A DNA stretch of 63,002 nt, counting the filler, from Parasitella parasitica NRRL 2501 (taxonomy: Eukaryota > Fungi > Mucoromycota), in NCBI GenBank assembly GCA_025201805.1. It is 9 parts of 9 records of this genome, joined end to end, with 100 filler letters (N's around TTAATTAATTAA, not from the genome) between each part and the next. Parts side by side here need not be neighbours in the genome. Positions count along the whole stretch, not along the records: positions 1 to 25,610 come from MU619381.1; 8 more parts are not named here. One strand, 5' to 3'. Each line of letters starts with the position of its first letter. Position 1 is the stretch's first letter. Below, in pieces: positions 1 to 10,959 of the stretch. Below the pieces are notes generated by a model that worked only from the letters and a program-made list of their open reading frames with translations, did no database searches and was not told the DNA's origin. Both the position numbers and the translations under genes were made by a program.

Positions 1-30
1 GGCAAAAAGTGTTGGAAAAACGAAAGAGAT

Positions 31-103
31 GCGGGTATAGCTCAGCTGGGAGAGCGTTAGACTGAAGATCTAAAGGCCAAGCGTTCGATCCGCTTTACCC
101 GCA
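31..103 (+). tRNA. tRNA-Phe (GAA), intronless
   Basis: Acceptor stem GCGGGTA/TACCCGC plus discriminator A; D-arm AGCTCAGCTGGGAGAGC; anticodon arm TTAGA-CTGAAGA-TCTAA; T-loop GTTCGATC; oligo-T Pol III terminator just downstream. Confidence 0.97.
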
Positions 104-177
104 ATAGCTTTTTTCACTAAAACTGATTTGTAGTGTGTGTAGTACCATTTTCATGGTCTAACGTATCGTATTTTTAC

Positions 178-1480
178 AGAATATTTGGGGGTACCTACAA
201 AATCTGAAAATAAATCTCACAAAAATGATCTAATCAAACTCACAAAAATGACCTAGTCAATCTCACAAAAAAAAAACTAAGGATTATAATAAAAAAGCAT
301 CATGCTTTATGCATGTTGGCGTAGCATATCTACATATAATAAATATACTTCGTTCTTCACTTAGCATCTTTACCACTTAGTTTTTTGGAATTATAAAATC
401 ATGTCTTTATATTTAATCTATCATGCCTAATAGAAACCTTCAACACAACATCACACATACAACTGTGGAAACCCGAGAGAAAATCTGCTTTGACCAATTT
501 ATGGATTATTTTATGACAGTAAAAGAAATCTGTCAAAAATATCGATTAGTTGATAAAACAGTCAGACATATCCTTGATTGATTTCGTAGAACTGACTCTG
601 TTGAATACCGTCCTCGGGGAGGCCCACGAAATATAAAGATTCAGCAAACCCACTCTGAATTTTTAAGAAATATAATCGATAAAGAAGATGAGGGAAACAT
701 TTTGACATTAGAGCAACTGCAGCAAAGACTTACTGACGAGTTCCCAGTAGAGTTTCCTTCAAAAAATGCAATTGGGATTTCTACAATCCAAATACATATA
801 ACTCAGAAGCTGCGCTTGACCCTCAAGAGAACATCGCCAGTGGAAGAAATACAAATAACTGAAAGAATAGCAAGAGTAGAGCGAAAAGATTACTGCATTG
901 GTCTTTCGCTCAAGGGTATTAATTACACGAGAAACTATATTTTTGTTGATAAAAGTGGATTTAATGCTTGTATGGTACCTGGACGTGCGAGATCAGCCAA
1001 AGGAAAGAAGGCCCATGTAATTACAAAGACGAAAAGGGGCAAGAACATTTCAATCATTGGTGCTATTTCAGCAAAAACGGGTTGAATCTTTACAAGCTTT
1101 TATGGTAGATGGTTCTACAAACAGGTTTATCTTTGCTGAATTTATCAAGCAGCGGTTGGAATGGGTTGATAATGTGTACCCACACCAAGAATTCTATTTT
1201 ATTATGGATAATGTAAAATTTCATTAGAGTCCTATTGTACAGGATATTTTTAAACACTCAAAACATAGCTGCCATTTTTTGCCACCATATTCTCCTGTGC
1301 TAAATCCTATAAAAACTAGCTTCAACAAATTGAAAAACTTTGTTAGAAGGAACCCAAAGAAAACAAAGAGACTATCTTGGAGCTCATTAAGGAAGCAGAG
1401 AAGAAAATAACGCCTCAAGACTGTGAAGGATGGGTCCATCATTGTGTCAATAACGTCAATAGATGTATAATAGAGATGTA
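178..1480 (+). mobile_element. Degenerate IS630/Tc1-like (DDE_3) transposon, pseudogenised transposase
   Basis: Fragments 'YIFVDKSGFN...GKNISIIGAIS', 'FIMDNVKFH' and 'FLPPYSPVLNPI' broken by stops/frameshifts; TA|CAG start and ~23-bp tandem repeats (CTCACAAAAATGA) at ~213-270 look like a terminus. Boundaries approximate. Confidence 0.75.
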
Positions 1481-3217: not shown

Positions 3218-4820
3218 CACTATTTTCAGAAATTATTGGGACATTTTAGAACAAATATTGGGACTATCTGTCATTAAATTTGGGACAAATCCAGAAATGA
3301 TTTGGGACATTAGCCTAATAAATATTGGGACACTTCTGGAAAAAACATTGAGACATTTTCAGAGAAAGTAAAATTCATTTATTACAAAGGCTCTTTCGCT
3401 AAACAAACATCGAATTTCTTAACAGAGTAGCGAGCAGAACCTTCAAGATCACTGTACAATACATCATTGCATGCATCGGTAATCCTGGTCGAAAGTGTTT
3501 CAGTTTTCAAGAGCCTCTCCCTCTTGAGCTTACTCTTGACCACATGCCAGAATTGCTCAATAGGATTAAGCTCAGGGGAGTATGGTGGGAGGTAAACACA
3601 TCTGTAACCTCGCTGAATGATATACCTCTCAATATCCTTGGCTGTATGGATGGGTGCATTATCCATAATAAGATAAAAATCTTTGAATTGCTCATGCTGG
3701 TCCATGATGTCCATCGTTTTCGCAACAAAATTAAAGTAATGGCCAGTTACAGTACCCACAGTTGTTGTTGCTTTTCCAGAAGACGTGCCAGCCAACTTTC
3801 TTTTCTTGTTGGATGTTCCAGGCAGCCTCACTTGAACATTCAACACCCCCCCCACACGCTAGTTGCACCAAGAATAGTGGTAGTCTTCGCTCTTGTTTGA
3901 GGGACAGGCACTTCAGCTCGAGTTCCTTTCTCTGACCAAGCCATTGTTCGCTTTAAATTGATATGAAAAGCTGACTCATCAATGAAAACACAATTGGACA
4001 TGTAATCNNNNNNNNNNNNNNNNNNNNNNNNNNNNNNNNNNNNNNNNNNNNNNNNNNNNNNNNNNNNNNNNNNNNNNNNNNNNNNNNNNNNNNNNNNNNN
4101 NNNNNNNNNNNNNNNNNNNNNNNNNNNNNNNNNNNNNNNNNNNNNNNNNNNNNNNNNNNNNNNNNNNNNNNNNNNNNNNNNNNNNNNNNNNNNNNNNNNN
4201 NNNNNNNNNNNNNNNNNNNNNNNNNNNNNNNNNNNNNNNNNNTAACCTTTCTTTGATCCTCTGCGTACCATCTATAAGCGGTCGTCCTTGATATATGACC
4301 ATGCGCTTTCCAAGCTTGATTAGGATTCATGCCATGGTCGTAGATAAGAATAAAAAATCTTGCTTTGTCTTTATCTGTGTAGCTGTTGTATTCAGCCTTG
4401 GGTTCATTCTTTTTATTTTTAATCTTTTTCTCCTTTACTGCGGTCAAGTCTCTTTCAGGTGGTTTCCTATCGACGTAAGTATTGTAGTTGGTAATGTTGC
4501 CGAGAGGGAAGGCTTCGTCGTCTACATCCATCTCGACAGCTTCGTTTCCATGCTCATCGACTGGAGCATTTATTCCATCTTCATAGTAAATTCTGATATC
4601 TGACATGTTATGAATAACGAAGAAATCAATTATGATTTCATCTCCAATCCCATTTAGTTTTGTCTCATTATAATTTCCAAAAGGGTTCCAATATTAATTA
4701 GGCAAGTGTTCCAAAACAGTTCAAGATTTGTCCCAAATTTAATGACAGATAGTCCCAATATTTGTTGAGAATTTGTACAAATTTTTTTTTAAAATGTCCC
4801 AATAATTTCTGAAAATAGTG
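3218..4820 (-). mobile_element. IS630/Tc1-mariner DNA transposon (DD34E) with TIRs and TA duplication
   Basis: TA|CACTATTTTCAGAAATTATTGGGACATTTT ... AAAATGTCCCAATAATTTCTGAAAATAGTG|TA; subterminal TTGGGAC repeats; transposase 4606->3382 with FIDES, MDNAPIH and LPPYSPELNPIE (34 residues D to E); frameshift in a G-run near 3845-3853; internal N gap. Confidence 0.93.
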
Positions 4821-4890: not shown

Positions 4891-4944
<54 letters not shown>

Positions 4945-5327: not shown

Positions 5328-7649
5328 TTAATTGTTTTTTTTAGCCTTTGTAGGAGTTAAATATATATTTGGTGACAGTTCTTTTGAAGCACTACCAGCA
5401 TCATCAGTACCACTAGCGATGCTCAAAAAAAAGTCGTCGTCTTCTTTTGCAATCACCCCTGTTAAGATTGTATCCTGTAACTTGGTATGATGATTTTTCC
5501 AAATATACAAGTTTTTGAGCGTGGCTATGAACGAAGGCAATTGATGTAGATATTCTGGTATGGAAAGATTGTTGGTGTGTTTGGCTACGTAGATATTATT
5601 GATTTTCTTTACAGCAAACATGTAACCACGTGGGCCTATGAATTTTTTAAATAGTCAACAACCCTATTATTTAGATATATGTATGTGTATGTGCTAGAAA
5701 CAGTAGGGAATCAGCTTACCAACCCAGTCCATACCAAGCGTATAAACATTTTTAGAATCATTTTCAGAAAGGGGTAATTCAAGAAGTCTACTAAGAATGG
5801 CTTTGTTCATTCTAATATTTTTTGCTTGCTGAATCAGGCATTGCTCCTGAGTAACTTTCTTTCGCTTCCATTCGTTAGTTGATAGTTCAATATTTCTTGT
5901 TGACAATAAAAGGTCGATTCGACGACCGAAGCCTCGATTTAAAGGTATGCTATTTCCATAGATGTTTTCATGGTCTTTTGCAATAGACTTGCTAGCTTTA
6001 CTTGTTGTTTCGCCACTATAGGGAATAGGCAAATAAGTACATTTCGAGGCAACGTTAATAAAAGGACTTTTATGTTATCTACTTACTCTAGCAAGTTCAA
6101 GTTCGAATCTTTCAGTAGAATATCCAGAATGGATGCCACTTTTCTATAGCATGTCAGTTCTGAATCATTCTCGTTTGGCTTTAACGTATCGTCAGCTATA
6201 ACATTTCTAGCTATGATTTCCATTATGTCTAAAACTGCAGTAATGTCGTCCTCATTCTCCTCAATTGCCTTAACTTTTTCTTTTGCAATGGTCAATCTTA
6301 ACTGCTTGAGAGCAAGCCTACCTTTTGTATTTTTGCTAAGCTAATAAAGGAAGAAAGTCAGTGACTGCTTTCATAAAATAATTACAACTTACCTGAATCA
6401 TACGGTTAAAGGTCTCCTCCGATGTAACGGACATTGCAGGCGCGAGCTCTATATTTACACTGTTGACCTCTTCCCAAAATGATTCGTTTTTGACATATTT
6501 TTGAAAAACTTTCAAAGTGCTAGAGTTGACGAGACTCACAGTTTTTGATAGAGAGAGTCTAAGAAAAAAGAGATATAATGTTAAGCGTTAAAAGAGTAAT
6601 GGTTTTAAATGTTTACTTACTTCAAGGCGTTTACTTCATTAATGTCTCCATCATTAAGATCAAGTATCAATTTAGTTGACATGAGATCCAGTTCTTCGGC
6701 CATTGTGGTAGGTTTTAAATTTTTTGCCATTTTTTTGAGAGTGGAGATTTCTATTTGGCTTAAAGAACCATGGAGCTATATTAATTGTAAATATAAAAAA
6801 TTAGCGACCTAATAACATAGTTATTTCTCTAGATGAATGATTTACCCTTTTTGCTCCAAGAAAATATACCTCGTGGCGAACTTGCGATGCTAAGATGATC
6901 GGTCTGTTGACGGAGTCATAAAGTATATCTGTTTGATTTATTTTTCCTACAAAGTAAAATCTTGTCAGAAAAAGACATCAAGTTTTAAAGTAGGATATAC
7001 ATACTTTTATTTGCTGCATTTCCTGTTGGAAGCGGATTCTATATATAAAAAAATCACAAAGAAGTTATTTTATGCTTACAAACATAGCTGTTGTCTTTTA
7101 TGTATTTACAAAAAGGTCATCGATCTCGTCTCTACATCATTTAAGAAACTTTTTTAGCCTTTAAATTAATTTTAAAAGTTGTGGTTATTTGCCCAAATAC
7201 CTCAATTTTTGTCTTTCTTCAACAGTTCTTTCAGTAGTTTGTCTTTCAATAGTGGTATTGCTTGACGAAGCGCCAAAACTAATATTGCTTGATATCACAT
7301 TGCCGGTTATTTTTATACAGTTACTTGACTCATCCTTAGCAAGACATTGTTACAAATTAATGTTTAGTGACTTAACCGTTTGCTATAAATTTCTTTTACG
7401 TACCTGGTTTTTATCTTTGTTTTCACTTTCTTTGACAATATTGTTTACAGAGTCTTTTAATTCCTCACTGATTGATGGATCCCTTGCAATGCTTTTCAGA
7501 TGGTATAAAAATGTACTTTCGAGGGCTTTTTTGCTCTTTTGTGAATGTTTTTCTTCGTAATATTTAATGTAGTTAGACAAATCCCATTCAGAAAGAGGGT
7601 GTTCTGAGAAAAAACTATCTTTTGATTTAAGATGTTTATAGTTGTGCAT
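5328..7649 (-). CDS. Multi-exon hypothetical protein with C-terminal PD-(D/E)xK restriction-endonuclease-like domain (repeat/TE-associated family)
   Basis: Colinear minus-strand exons (7649-7383, 6539-, 6295-6083, 6032-5720, 5621-5328) separated by GT-AG introns; motif 'GE...SKAS...GRRIDLLL....ELSTNEWK' fits E..D..ExK. Exon structure and start are approximate; family call is from motif recognition only. Confidence 0.6.
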
Positions 7650-7847
7650 AGGTACAGTATCGATGATGCTTTTGAGAAACTAGACTCTTTAACAAAACTC
7701 ATAAACCTTGTGCAACGCGTTGTTACAATTGCCTAATAATATATTCTCCGACACATACGTCACCATCTCAACAATTCAAACACGATAGAAAAAAAAAGAA
7801 AAGATAAGGCTTTTCATCTCTTCTGTAAGAATCAGCAAAACATTGCT

Positions 7848-8355
7848 CAGGCTAGGACTCTTCACCTCATATTCAACCATGAGGTAAGTTTCGACAACCC
7901 AGCTTCTTTTTATCGTTTAGGGATTCCTTTTGGGAACTTAAGATAAAAGATGCCCGCCTGCTTAACACAGCATAAGCTAGACTTGGCTACTTATCCCTTG
8001 AGAAGCGACAACCCCACTTATTTGTAAGAACATCGCTTCCAACAAGCTTTGTTGTTTATGAATATGTTCGTCTAGGTGCTAATATTACCAATGTTTTGAT
8101 TGCAAAAGCAAGGAGACAGGCTAGGACTCTTCACCTCATATTCAACCATGAGGTAAGTTTCGACAACCCAGCTTCTTTTTATCGTTTAGGGATTCCTTTT
8201 GGGAACTTAAGATAAAAGATGCCCGCCTGCTTAACACAGCATAAGCTAGACTTTGCTACTTATCCCTTGAGAAGCGACAACCCCACTTATTTGTAAGAAC
8301 ATCGCTTCCAACAAGCTTTGTTGTTTATGAATATGTCCGTCTAGGTGTTAATATT
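7848..8355. repeat. Two 239-bp direct repeats (7848-8086, 8117-8355) with 30-bp spacer; candidate structured ncRNA pair
   Basis: Copies differ at 3 positions by my comparison; multiple internal hairpins; each copy is flanked by its own inverted repeat. Confidence 0.9.
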
Positions 8356-9459
8356 TCTTCTTGCAACTGGTTCAAAAAAAAAAATTCGCTTACGGCCACG
8401 TGCAGGTAATACGTTTTATACTCAATCTTGGTATGCAATGTGATGGAACTAATGTTGTTTTTTTCTTTTTTACCCATACGAGAACGCTTCTCTCTGCAAC
8501 GCTTTGGTTGGGTTCTTTTGCAAGGAAAAGCTTGAAGATCTCTGTCTTAAGTAGTTTACAGCAAGCTCATTTCTAGTAACCTTTAGACTTTGGCATCGAT
8601 GGCATAGGTGGTTTTTAGCGTTTTTGGGTAAGCACATTAGCCCCTGGAAATGAAGAGAAAAGGAGCAGAAACATCAAGGTTACCCTGATGACTGAACAAA
8701 CGTTGAATGAGCGACTTTTTCATTTTGAACATCCAACTACTTGGCCACATAAACGACAAAGACAAAGCAATAACAAAGTCTAAAGAAAAAGAGTTCAAGA
8801 ATATAAAAATGAAGTGTGTACTGGCTGCATCTGTATCTACTTAGTATTGTTTAAATTTACAATAAACATAAACTTAGAATTGGGTAAATCACTTATAATT
8901 TGAGTCCTTTTAGATCTATTGAACCTAAGTTGATAGATTACTGCCGCTACTCCTGATTTACAATGGTTGATCTATTATATTTAGAACTTTGTACTTTCTA
9001 TAGGGATAAACTAGGATATATAGATGTATGTATAGATGATGCGTCATCGCAGTTTTGTTAATTAATTAAAAAAGATAGGAAGAGGCACTTGTATATAATC
9101 TGAGACTGTATTGAAACTTTCTTAGTAGAGTATCTTTGTTTGAATAGAGCCTTTTCAATATGTAAAATGTAGACCCACCATTTTGCTTACAATTTTTTTA
9201 ATCAGCAGGATTGAATTTTATATCGCAAGAAAAGAATAAATATTAATAATCTTGGGAACAATAAAGCTCAAGTCTTTAGTTCTAGTAAGTATCCTAGTCA
9301 TCCGAGACTTTAAACTCAAAAAAGATACTATTCTTCAAATAATTGCAGACGCTAGCAACCAAGTTGCTCAATCATCTTTTGAAGGGTTTGCGCGCTATTC
9401 TAATAGGCGTTTTGATGACTGCCTTGCAGGCCGTCCTATTTAATAAACAATTATATATA

Positions 9460-9610
9460 CAGTACGACATCTTTTTCTTAAAAGGCACGACACTCTTCTC
9501 TTGAATCGTGCGACACTGTTTTTTTATAAAGTGCGACACTCTTTTCTAAAAACATACGACACTCTTTTTTTTAAAAGCGCGACACTTTAACTTTTTTTTT
9601 TGCGACATCA
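9460..9610. repeat. Array of ~7 CGACAC/CGACAT motifs at ~22-nt spacing, probable orphan Tc1-like terminus
   Basis: Starts TA|CAGTA; repeated [A/G]CGACACT(C)TTTT units resemble subterminal transposase-binding repeats. Confidence 0.55.
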
Positions 9611-10119: not shown

Positions 10120-10959
10120 ATGGAATTTGCCAACCCAATGGAAGCTACCTCAGTACCTATCGAACACAGATTTGAACCTTACGATGATAATGGAGGGTAA
10201 AGAATTACTGAATCAGTGAATCAGTAAATCATTGATAACATGTCGAGAACATTGATTGACGCCTTTTTTTCTTTCTTTCATGAACAGTACCTCTTTAGCC
10301 ATCGCAGGAAAAGATTTTTGTGTCATTGCTTCTGATACCAGACAAAGCACCGGGTACAGTATCAATTCTAGATATGCGCCCAAGGCGTATAAATTATCAG
10401 AGTCGTCTGTGATTGCCATGAATGGATTTCATGCTGACGGCCTAACTTTAAAGAAAGTGCTCGATCAAAGACTTAAGGTAACACTTAGAAGGTCCGAGTA
10501 TGCAGACAAATCAAGTACTAAGTATATCTTTAGTGGTATAAATTCAGTCATGAGAAAGACATGTCTGTTACGGCTGTAGCACAAATGTTATCCATCACGC
10601 TGTACCAAAAACGTTTCTTCCCTTACTATAGTTTCTGCGTTTTGGGAGGTGTCGATGAAAATGGTAGAGGAGCGGTTTATTGCTACGATGCTATTGGATC
10701 ATTTGAACGTGAAATGTGTCGTGCCAATGGCTCAGCATCAGCACTTATTCAACCTTTCTTGGATAATCAGGTTGGCAAGAAGAACATGGCAAATAAAAAG
10801 TTTGAAGATATGGAATTGGACGAAGTTCTCAAAATCGTAAAGGATGCATTTACTTCTGCTACAGAGCGTGATATTTATACCGGTGATAACCTTCAAATTT
10901 TTATTATTCGTAAAGATCAGCCTGTTGAAGTACAACTTCATCCTTTGAAGAGAGATTAA
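10120..10959 (+). CDS. PRE7: 20S proteasome subunit beta type-6 (PSMB1/PRE7), 3 exons
   Basis: RFEPYDDNGG|TSLAIAGKDFCVIASDTRQS, LYQKRFFPYY, AFTSATERDIYTGD, C-terminal LKRD. Confidence 0.95.

Follow-up and report, generated by a model that had tools for sequence, protein, structure and literature searches.

A tandem pair of stem-closed modules in Parasitella parasitica, probably encoded by a non-coding RNA gene family absent from Rfam

What is encoded by a 239-nt sequence that stands twice in tandem, each copy closed by a helix of its own, beside a nuclease-like gene of the fungus Parasitella parasitica NRRL 2501 (Mucoromycota)? The stretch of DNA analyzed here (the window; 63,002 nt, filler included) joins parts of nine records of assembly GCA_025201805.1, and positions are counted along it. 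A preliminary description had taken the two copies for an array of non-coding RNAs cut out through their flanking stems, possibly in partnership with the nuclease, or else for a small element that inserts at the center of palindromes. Our analysis suggests that the locus is probably (at a probability of about 0.6) a plus-strand gene for a structured non-coding RNA, with a multi-hairpin module of ~240 nt, that belongs to a family absent from Rfam.

Layout of the tandem unit and its closing helices

The tandem repeat that had been described was recovered both by a repeat search and by direct reading (Table 1). The two copies are 99% identical and start 269 nt apart (TRF: period 269, copy number 1.9), and unit 1 differs from unit 2 by three substitutions (7985 G/8254 T, 8069 T/8338 C, and 8079 C/8348 T). 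We had considered whether the junction of a simple duplication had been copied in inverted form to give the 30-nt spacer between the units (8087-8116); this was replaced by the simpler reading that the spacer comprises the 3′ strand of the first closing helix, or clamp, and the 5′ strand of the second. The order of elements on the plus strand is thus 5′-P1-[s1-U1-s1′]-linker-[s2-U2-s2′]-P1′-3′. Conserved motifs that remain unpaired within the module include CGACAA, which occurs twice, and the loops UAUCCCUU and CCAAC.

Table 1. Elements of the tandem locus and of the region 3′ of it, in window positions.
Feature	Position	Strand	Basis or remark
Outer helix P1, 5′ strand GAAUCAG	7829..7835	+	MFE fold of 7826-8380
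Clamp s1, 5′ strand CAAAACAUUGcu, unit 1	7836..7847	+	10 bp with 8089-8098; fold and shuffles
Unit 1 (U1), structured 239-nt module	7848..8086	+	Repeat search; covariation-backed helices
Clamp s1, 3′ strand acCAAUGUUUUG	8087..8098	+	Fold
A-rich linker AUUGCAAAA joining the two clamped modules	8099..8107	+	Unpaired in MFE fold
Clamp s2, 5′ strand GCAAGGAGA, unit 2	8108..8116	+	9 bp with 8356-8364; fold and shuffles
Unit 2 (U2), three differences from unit 1	8117..8355	+	Repeat search
Clamp s2, 3′ strand UCUUCUUGC	8356..8364	+	Fold
Outer helix P1, 3′ strand CUGGUUC	8367..8373	+	Fold
A-rich tail, ending at conserved CAG/GUAAU	8374..8402	+	71% identity to C64; least conserved part
Candidate intron-like segment GUAAU ... 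ACUAAU ... AG	8403..8476	+	90% identity to C64
Conserved non-coding downstream region, probably of the same transcript	8477..9235	+	Homology to C64

The claim that each unit is closed by its own helix was borne out, in that both clamps are present in the minimum free energy (MFE) fold of the 555-nt stretch with a pair probability of ~1. In clamp s1, CAAAACAUUG (7836-7845) pairs with CAAUGUUUUG, and in clamp s2, GCAAGGAGA pairs with UCUUCUUGC, with one G-U among its pairs. When the flanks were shuffled, the observed energy was matched in 0 of 2000 cases for clamp s1 and in 9 of 2000 for clamp s2. The flanks had been called unrelated between copies; they do differ, but they are not wholly unrelated, as both clamps start with GCAA at the 5′ end and finish with UUGC at the 3′ end. 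The same MFE fold contains an outer helix, P1, that encloses both units and is absent from the preliminary description. Its wobble pair U7832-G8370 would be a C-A mismatch if read on the minus strand.

Homologous loci and compensatory change

A genome-wide check for further copies by BLAST and covariance models identified at least 10 units at eight loci, denoted C145 (the locus of this window), C64, C62, C43, C93, C52a, C52b, and C110. The units form three clades, with 52-64% identity between clades in the 3′ half. Three locus pairs, including C145/C64, are segmental paralogues with shared flanks, and C52a and C52b are 5′-truncated. Single-unit loci combine a 5′ flank of the s1 type (as in unit 1) with a 3′ flank of the s2′ type (as in unit 2). 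Between C145 and C64, leader and unit are 94% identical whereas the flanks are 63-78% identical, a contrast that, judged from sequence comparison, may be counted as a sign of selection on the unit. In both of these loci, A-rich runs follow P1′.

The second locus with two modules, C43, carries two 241-nt units that are 98% alike and 36 nt apart. Its clamps (AACAUU/AAUGUU and, as the counterpart of clamp s2, AGAGAAGG/CCUUCUCU) differ in sequence from those of the window and are again paired, so that the pattern of flanks that vary while remaining complementary recurs at a very diverged locus; these clamps only marginally beat shuffles (~10%), and the s1 clamp there has a pair probability of 0.19. 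Counterparts of P1 were identified in C64 (AAUCAGC/GCUGGUU), C62 (AAUCAG/CUGAUU), and C43 (CACUGG/CCAGUG), and the 5′ sequence of clamp s1, AAACAUUG, is kept in C64, C62, C43, and C93. Collectively, the flanking stems look selected. The unit of C64, 94% conserved, nevertheless lacks a good inner clamp, which suggests that the clamps may not be essential.

Across the homologues, 88-95% of alignment cells that correspond to predicted pairs are paired, versus 29-54% when the partners are slid. In the alignment of 10 sequences with 18 pairs, 88% of cells are paired (29-48% with slid partners) and both sides have changed in 7 of the 18 pairs; none of 500 shuffles equaled the observed percentage paired, the count of cells with both sides changed, or the covariation score. 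The alignment of six sequences with 30 pairs yielded 95% paired cells (39-54% with slid partners). An example is hairpin H1, where ACCUCAU/AUGAGGU is replaced by UUCCUUG/CAAGGAA in C62 through four double changes. Compensatory changes were seen in four helices, and the ~240-nt module contains at least five that covary. Since the homologue set consists of one genome and a few metatranscriptome contigs, few independent lineages underlie the covariation. The helices contain many G-U pairs, which would become A-C mismatches on the other strand; this favors the plus strand as the one that folds. Not all hairpins that had been proposed survived the comparison: ACCUCAU/AUGAGGU and CUUUUUAUC/GAUAAAAG are backed by the paralogues, but GAAGCGA/UCGCUUC and CAACAA/UUGUUG are not kept, and the helices GCUaCUU/GAGaAGC, UUUGUA.A/UUAUGAA, and GCUU/AAGC are conserved among paralogues instead. 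The compensatory changes, together with stops in six frames, uphold the reading of the unit as a structured non-coding RNA module.

Coding potential, known RNA families, and the neighboring gene

All six frames contain stops, and tblastx similarity is equal in every frame. A protein-coding exon was therefore rejected, since all frames are stopped, there is no frame bias, and indels of 1 and 2 nt are present relative to C64. A coding exon of the form ATG-AG/GTAAGT was likewise rejected, as neither C62 nor C64 retains the site and no frame is free of stops.

In line with the preliminary description, which had found no match to snRNA, U3, SRP, RNase P/MRP, or a canonical hammerhead, a scan of the unit region with Rfam 15, whose families include snRNAs, SRP, RNase P/MRP, U3, snoRNAs, self-cleaving ribozymes, and the TPP riboswitch, returned no match at the gathering threshold, and at E ≤ 10 a single chance match was obtained (IsrM, 9 bits against 376). 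The downstream region and four paralogous loci were also without an Rfam match. Elsewhere in the window, a tRNA at 31-103 is the only Rfam match above the gathering threshold, and ARAGORN reported only a tRNA-Phe at 30-104. Inspection of the unit by eye detected neither UGAUGA nor CUGA as expected of box C/D RNAs; of H/ACA features, there is no ACA three bases from a conserved 3′ end, and matches to ANANNA are not conserved between clades. Rfam snoRNA families did not match the unit. An intron-hosted snoRNA was rejected on the basis of these boxes being absent by eye and of GUAAGA, just upstream of 7829, being missing in C43 and C93.

Size, CAACCCC-like motifs, and a site farther downstream that resembles a 5′ splice site led us to consider telomerase RNA. 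Telomerase RNA is encoded by a single-copy gene with a template of ~1.5 telomere repeats that is conserved among relatives. As the unit is multi-copy and as C62, C110, and C43 do not retain the CAACCCC and CCCUAAAC motifs, this candidate was rejected; a search with two candidate telomere repeats identified no telomere repeat for the genome. A resemblance to the 5′ region of U2 snRNA (AUCG..CCUUUUGG..UAAGAU) was also dismissed, as it is lost in other clades and was not reported by Rfam. Screening of metagenomes with the pattern GATTYCTTNNRGGAA N40-70 TTATCCCTT matched 14 loci, and nhmmer found none of these to be related to the unit, suggesting that the matches are due to chance.

The nuclease-like open reading frame (ORF) does lie near the units, as had been described, but it is on the minus strand and head to head with them, and its ATG, at 7649, lies 180 nt away from 7829. 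The proposed partnership was not substantiated: the gene and the units occupy opposite strands and, of at least 17 exon copies in the genome, only that of this window adjoins a unit. By locus, the gene is beside a unit at C145 and its segmental paralogue C64 only, among the eight loci, and C64 contains just the first exon. The tblastn set consisted of C64, C62, C52a, and C110, the last three of which gave no match to the gene, and none of the other exon copies is near a unit on the other unit-locus contigs. Pfam returned no significant match for the five exon ORFs, searched singly, and a PDB sequence search with the motif-bearing exon returned no match; assignment to the restriction-endonuclease fold thus stays a visual guess. 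The units have nothing to do with the adjoining nuclease-like gene, which disposes of the tempting but mistaken idea that a nuclease and its guide RNA stand side by side here in a eukaryote.

Transcripts, alternative explanations, and significance

Contigs from three RNA libraries (three studies; soil or insect) cover the unit region only, and not 6900-8050 or 8440-9300. These are assembled contigs at a depth of 2-6 that carry no strand, end, or abundance information. One contig runs unbroken from unit 1 through the spacer into unit 2 (8057-8355), and two others, X11 and X14, pass the 3′ clamp and reach position 8381 or beyond before continuing into diverged sequence, with X14 terminating in ...CACAUGCAGG. 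These contigs indicate that uncut molecules exist. Run X3, in which coverage extends evenly over the whole region, may include DNA; because its depth is consistent with DNA, it was left out as expression evidence.

The splice-like signals of the intron-like segment are conserved in clade 1, recur in C52a and in part in C110, and are lost in C93; no spliced joint between 8402 and 8477 was seen in the RNA-library contigs. From 8477 to ~8900, identity to C64 is ~90% with indels of 1 and 2 nt, and BLAST homology to C64 extends to ~9235. The first ~100 nt of this downstream region also align to C52a, and all frames within it contain stops.

The most likely history of the proposed RNA gene would begin with a stem-closed module, of which a second, tandem copy arose long ago. 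The U copies may since have been held 97-99% alike by gene conversion, which we infer because 97-99% identity within loci contrasts with ~60% between clades. The clamps, which share too little sequence for conversion, would have drifted apart through compensatory changes. Because the clamps differ, cross-pairing between the 5′ strand of either and the 3′ strand of its counterpart would be avoided. Each module would be insulated by its own clamp with the outer helix around both, and loci with a single module, such as C64, could have collapsed when the two repeats recombined. The gene may be transcribed abundantly by RNA polymerase II, and the RNA may act as a scaffold on which two identical modules are offered for protein binding; the function as a ribonucleoprotein (RNP) scaffold is a guess. 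Tentatively, and with less confidence than in the gene itself, we suggest that a new class of large structured RNA, found in early-diverging fungi, is represented by the locus, with an ancient two-module architecture, modules homogenized by conversion, and co-evolving private clamps. Such an RNA would act as a bivalent RNP scaffold or, alternatively, as two domains that sense a ligand or a protein and control the processing of their own transcript.

The contigs bear most directly on the idea of a precursor array, in which an RNase III- or Dicer-type enzyme would cut at the flanking stems to release RNAs of ~240-260 nt, possibly with the adjacent nuclease. Each unit does have its own abutting helix of 9-10 bp, with the same design at C43, and one contig, X6, has its end precisely at the final base of unit 2 (8355), which may be coincidence. 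We nevertheless regard such excision as unlikely, since one contig is unbroken through the spacer and two reach beyond the 3′ clamp, the part assigned to the nuclease is refuted, and helices of 9-10 bp are short beside those of known RNase III substrates. A cis-acting sensor, that is, two tandem aptamer-like domains with their own P1s that control use of the splice-like site or transcript stability, would account for the P1-type closing helices, the conserved unpaired nucleotides, and the presence of two modules per transcript. It would also give a role to the conserved CAG/GUAAU located 29 nt past P1′ and to GUAUGA, which in C43 directly follows P1′. The TPP riboswitch, to our knowledge the only riboswitch class known in eukaryotes, acts on splicing in fungi and provides a precedent. 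However, no conserved or common coding gene lies downstream at any unit locus, the splice-like signals are lost in C93 and no spliced joint occurs in the contigs, and ~240 nt is large for an aptamer, all of which makes a sensor distinctly unlikely.

Recent copying offers another way to account for units that are so alike. A mobile or retroposed element (MITE-like, SINE-like, or inserting into palindromes without duplication) would be consistent with the multiple copies, the 5′ truncation of C52a and C52b, and the A-rich runs past P1′ in C145 and C64. Yet only eight loci were found, three pairs of which are segmental paralogues, and neither target-site duplications nor shared terminal (inverted) repeats are visible among the copies. 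Moreover, the helices keep pairing via double changes across clades that are 52-64% identical, unlike the neutral decay of transposons, and an internal T5 run (7906-7910) speaks against SINE-type transcription by RNA polymerase III, for which a T-run is a terminator. We consider this explanation very unlikely. Insertion at the center of palindromes, the alternative offered in the preliminary description, fits poorly given that the transcript includes AAACAUUG, which is shared from clade to clade, that single-unit loci combine the 5′ flank of unit 1 with the 3′ flank of unit 2, and that compensatory change occurs within units. Finally, with only three bases separating the units, the repeat could be a functionless recent intergenic duplication, made by a mechanism that incidentally also produced the hairpins and the complementarity of the flanks; templated or snap-back repair is able to create inverted filler at junctions. 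The 94% identity of the unit against 63-78% for the flanks between old paralogous loci, the covariation, the recurrence of the same design at a locus that is ~60% identical, and the coverage by RNA-library contigs render this highly improbable.

Comparison with known systems places the proposed RNA gene among several partial likenesses. Tandem riboswitches, such as those for glycine, likewise consist of two homologous domains side by side with differing P1-type helices of their own and a short linker, but they are bacterial, have 50-100 nt per aptamer, bind a known ligand, and regulate a gene downstream, whereas the modules here are of ~240 nt, eukaryotic, and without a downstream coding gene. 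The two glycine aptamers have also diverged from each other, in contrast to modules that are 99% identical. Dimeric Alu/7SL-derived RNAs share a left module, an A-rich linker, a right module, an A-rich tail, and paired module ends, and are abundant non-coding transcripts, to which the candidate transcript here may be likened. The unit family differs from them in its internal T5 run, which speaks against RNA polymerase III, in its small number of loci (eight), and in its conserved downstream region, which is not repetitive; it lacks target-site duplications and any similarity to SRP RNA (Rfam). The RNase III stems around 16S/23S rRNA in bacterial operons and the external stems of box C/D snoRNA precursors are also mutually pairing, unit-specific, and abutting; rRNA processing stems are ≥20 bp with proven cleavage sites, whereas the stems of the units, putative cleavage sites at most, are 9-10 bp. 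The omegaRNAs of IscB/TnpB and the retron msr-msd, the latter with flanking a1/a2 inverted repeats, are structured RNAs by a nuclease-like gene as well. There, the RNA is on the same strand as, and adjacent to or overlapping, a protein gene with which it always co-occurs; at the unit loci, the gene points away from the RNA and accompanies it in a single case.

Published fungal motif sets come mainly from Ascomycota. These sets and the bacterial OLE, GOLLD, and ROOL RNAs, which we take to be unrelated in sequence to the unit, were likewise recognized by structure and covariation, with function unknown at discovery. Two of the fungal sets comprise 15 (PMC5640933) and 17 (PMC8216456) structured-RNA motifs. 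Judged from Rfam and from the descriptions of these motif sets, the family appears not to have been described before.

Universal RNAs comprise rRNA, tRNA, snRNA, snoRNA, SRP, RNase P/MRP, and telomerase RNAs. Beyond these, the TPP riboswitch, and a few candidate motifs from screens, we know of few eukaryotic RNAs with a structure backed by compensatory evolution, and of almost no covariation-backed RNA structures from Mucoromycota-like fungi. If the tentative reading as a new class is true, the family would join a very small number of structured RNA families in eukaryotes that are defined by covariation and lie beyond the universal set. Pairs of near-identical modules per transcript, with private clamps, at two loci that are ~60% identical, would constitute a natural experiment, and it may therefore become possible to test how tandem RNA domains avoid misfolding, how conversion plays against stem co-evolution, and what role an orphan RNA has.

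Structure and Distribution of the Clamped Units

A repeat search of the window recovered two direct copies (units 1 and 2) that are 99% identical, with starts 269 nt apart, a 30-nt spacer and three base differences (7985/8254, 8069/8338, and 8079/8348), in agreement with the preliminary description. In the minimum-free-energy fold of positions 7826–8380, the private flanking helix of each unit (clamps s1 and s2) is formed at a pair probability close to 1, together with an outer helix (P1) around both units. Shuffled 3′ flanks matched the clamp energy in 0 of 2000 trials for s1 and 9 of 2000 for s2, bearing out the earlier observation that each pair of flanks base-pairs and abuts its unit; one unit with its flanks gave a folding z of -3.1 on either strand. 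The tandem clamped units are therefore real and not due to chance. That the flanks are unrelated between copies held only in part: the closing stems are different, but their 5′ strands share the start AGCAA and their 3′ strands share UUGC.

Features of the window, related loci, and matching contigs (window positions unless a locus is named)
Feature	Position	Strand	Remarks
tRNA-Phe (GAA)	30-104	+	69 bits in Rfam
Tandem repeat	209-271		23 nt, 2.7 copies, after tRNA-Phe
Transposase remnant	3382-4606	-	Tc1/mariner-type; ORF 3382-3855 matches Pfam DDE_3 (E 4e-21); upstream ORFs broken by a run of N (a gap or withheld sequence)
Poly(A) run	4894-4942		49 nt
Nuclease-like gene	5328-7649	-	head to head with units; ATG at 7649
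Outer helix P1	7829-7835 with 8367-8373	+	7 bp
Clamp s1	7836-7845 with 8089-8098	+	10 bp, abuts unit 1
Unit 1	7848-8086	+	239 nt
H1	7862-7868 with 7877-7883	+	supported by paralogue pairing
H2		+	CUUUUUAUC/GAUAAAAG, apical UUCC/GGAA; supported
Small hairpin		+	UGCU/AGCA; supported
H4		+	GCUaCUU/GAGaAGC, loop UAUCCCUU; supported
Long hairpin		+	UUUGUA.A/UUAUGAA, cap GCUU/AAGC, loop CCAAC; supported
Clamp s2	8108-8116 with 8356-8364	+	9 bp including one G-U, abuts unit 2
Unit 2	8117-8355	+	239 nt
X6 contig (soil)	8057-8355		299 nt, crosses spacer
X11 contig (soil)	8129-8381 and beyond		260 nt
X14 contig (insect-associated)	8192-8381		212 nt; then 22 diverged bases ending ...CACAUGCAGG
Dispersed repeat	starts about 9305-9600	+	at least 6 further contigs (C225, C182, C15, C207, C106 twice, C6) carry copies at 83-93% identity
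Tandem array	9456-9586		23/46/69 nt, adjoins dispersed repeat
Proteasome beta-type subunit gene	10256-10959	+	at least 2 exons; Pfam Proteasome E 1.6e-18, 2.4e-12
Clade 1			C145 (window locus, two units); C64 (one unit)
Clade 2			C62; C52a (5′-truncated); C110
Run of N, C62	L004 1414-1437		directly upstream of unit, after T run >20; 5′ leader unreadable
Clade 3, C43	L038 1433-1950		two units
Clade 3, C52b	L040 (contig C52) 1490-1690		5′-truncated
Clade 3, C93	L043 1484-1745		single unit

The unit recurs within this genome: BLAST, together with a pair of covariance models constructed for this analysis, identified at least 10 units at at least 8 loci in three clades across 32.8 Mb, both counts being lower bounds. 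In the well-aligned 3′ half of the unit, identity is only 52–64% between clades and 97–98% within the unit pairs of C145 or C43. C145/C64 and C43/C52b, whose shared flanks are 79% and 90% identical, are clearly segmental paralogues; for C62 and C52a, similarity (85%) is limited to the unit plus a short stretch 3′ of it. Between C145 and C64, the leader and unit are 94% identical, the A-rich tail 71%, and the next 500 nt about 90%, while the surrounding DNA is 63–78% identical, showing that the unit and a region downstream evolve more slowly than their surroundings. Downstream of the clade 3 units, a length of about 220–1000 nt of non-coding sequence is likewise kept among the C43, C93, and C52b loci (77–90%). 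Where loci form such pairs (C145/C64 and C43/C52b clearly, C62/C52a within the limits just given), each has a fuller member and a collapsed or 5′-truncated one, a pattern that would be expected after whole-genome or large segmental duplication.

A Conserved Fold with Private Clamps

Across ten sequences from all three clades, 88% of cells in three helices (18 pairs) were paired, versus 29–48% with slid partners, and seven of the 18 pairs had double-sided changes. In 500 shuffles, the observed values of percentage paired, covariation score, and count of double-changed cells were never reached. Six clade 1 and 2 sequences gave 95% paired for 30 pairs in six helices, versus 39–54% when slid. H1 exhibits four double changes (ACCUCAU/AUGAGGU in C145 to UUCCUUG/CAAGGAA in C62), and this compensatory change backs one hairpin of the preliminary description; two others, GAAGCGA/UCGCUUC and CAACAA/UUGUUG, do not persist in the other clades. 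A relative's contig in public run X3, with 23 differences from unit 2 over 189 bases, replaces an A-A mismatch in H4 with G-C and two G-U pairs with A-U. The motif CGACAA follows both H1 and H4 in all clades. By sequence comparison, these data show a predicted modular RNA fold that is conserved. G-U and U-G pairs are frequent in the supported helices and would be A-C mismatches on the minus strand, which points to the plus strand as the RNA.

Stops interrupt the unit in every frame; translated similarity among loci is equal in all six frames, and 1- and 2-nt indels occur in comparison with C64. These features indicate that it lacks coding capacity. Neither the unit, the downstream region, nor four paralogous loci matched Rfam at gathering score or E ≤ 10, consistent with the earlier failure to match known RNA classes.

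The two-unit locus C43, found only with a covariance model (E about 0.006), comprises 241-nt units that are 98% alike and 36 nt apart. Its 5′ flank AACAUU pairs with AAUGUU at the spacer start, and the spacer end AGAGAAGG pairs with CCUUCUCU 3′ of unit 2; the 5′ clamp strands share the start GCAAA. Together with its outer helix, this predicted layout matches that of the window, with clamps that are statistically weaker (about 10% of shuffles reach them; pair probability 0.8–0.9 for s2 and 0.19 for s1). In our own alignment, with strands aligned position for position, four of six outer-helix pairs changed on both sides between C145 (AAUCAG/CUGGUU) and C43 (CACUGG/CCAGUG); C62 has AAUCAG/CUGAUU and C64 has AAUCAGC/GCUGGUU. 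The 5′ clamp sequence AAACAUUG is kept in all clades, and its complement, CAAUGUUU, lies in the 3′ flank of C93. Every single-unit locus has a unit-1-type 5′ flank and a unit-2-type 3′ flank. Private clamps and an outer helix are thus shown to be a feature of the RNA family.

Transcription and Candidate Roles

Of the 20 public runs (13 studies) that contain parts of the stretch, five are recorded as RNA. Three RNA libraries, each from a different study (X6, X11, and X14), gave contigs within 6900–9300 only on the units, with none on their flanks. This pattern favours an abundant transcript carrying both units and extending past the 3′ clamp, the contigs giving no strand, ends, or level; transcription of the units is probable. 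X3, which covers everything at DNA-consistent depth, was left out as expression evidence. Pol III is unlikely because of a T5 run inside the unit (7906–7910), and the transcript is therefore taken to be Pol II-derived.

The preliminary description proposed that units are excised at the clamps as candidate ~240–260-nt RNAs, possibly acting with the adjacent nuclease. The nuclease fold is a putative assignment of that description; searches of single exons against Pfam and PDB sequences gave nothing significant. At least 17 relatives of the exon with a D...ExK-like motif occur in the genome, only the window's copy lies beside a unit, and among the other unit loci searched by tblastn (C64, C62, C52a, and C110) only C64 retains a piece of the gene. 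The partnership is refuted, and the RNA has no link to this gene. Several copies of the gene family, spread over the genome, carry in-frame stops, and the family may itself be repeated or mobile. Excision as such is doubtful, given that the X6 contig crosses the spacer and those of X11 and X14 run past the 3′ clamp. Splice-like signals (CAG|GUAAU, ACUAAU, and AG; 8403–8476) kept in clade 1 would suit a tandem sensor acting on a downstream site, but no spliced joint was seen there in the RNA-library contigs and such a sensor is unlikely. We consider it improbable that the units are a mobile element and very improbable that they have no function.

Origin and Novelty of the Two-Module RNA

We infer that a stem-closed module was duplicated in tandem, after which gene conversion would have kept the modules alike; the clamps, changing by compensatory substitution, would have escaped it after their divergence. 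On this view the 30-nt spacer would consist of the 3′ half of s1 followed by the 5′ half of s2, and no exotic junction would be necessary. Unlike clamps would also keep a 5′ clamp strand from pairing with the other clamp's 3′ strand. A locus that recombined between its two repeats would be left with one unit and mismatched flanks, as C64 appears to be. The two-module form is probably old, being present in two of the three deep clades, though each two-unit locus could also have been duplicated independently.

We know of no described counterpart of the clamped-unit RNA, the fungal structured-RNA surveys PMC5640933 and PMC8216456 being considered at the level of title and abstract. Tandem riboswitches have two domains with a P1 each, like the clamped modules, and dimeric Alu RNA resembles the window RNA in setting an A-rich linker between two modules and an A-rich tail after them; the processing stems of bacterial rRNAs are a further close analogy. 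Membership fails in all three cases. With evidence from one genome and a few metatranscriptome contigs, we regard the units as a new RNA family with a putative role: an abundant Pol II RNA that would present two identical modules, whose conserved unpaired motifs (CGACAA twice, UAUCCCUU, and CCAAC) may be binding sites, and which would thereby act as a bivalent RNP scaffold.
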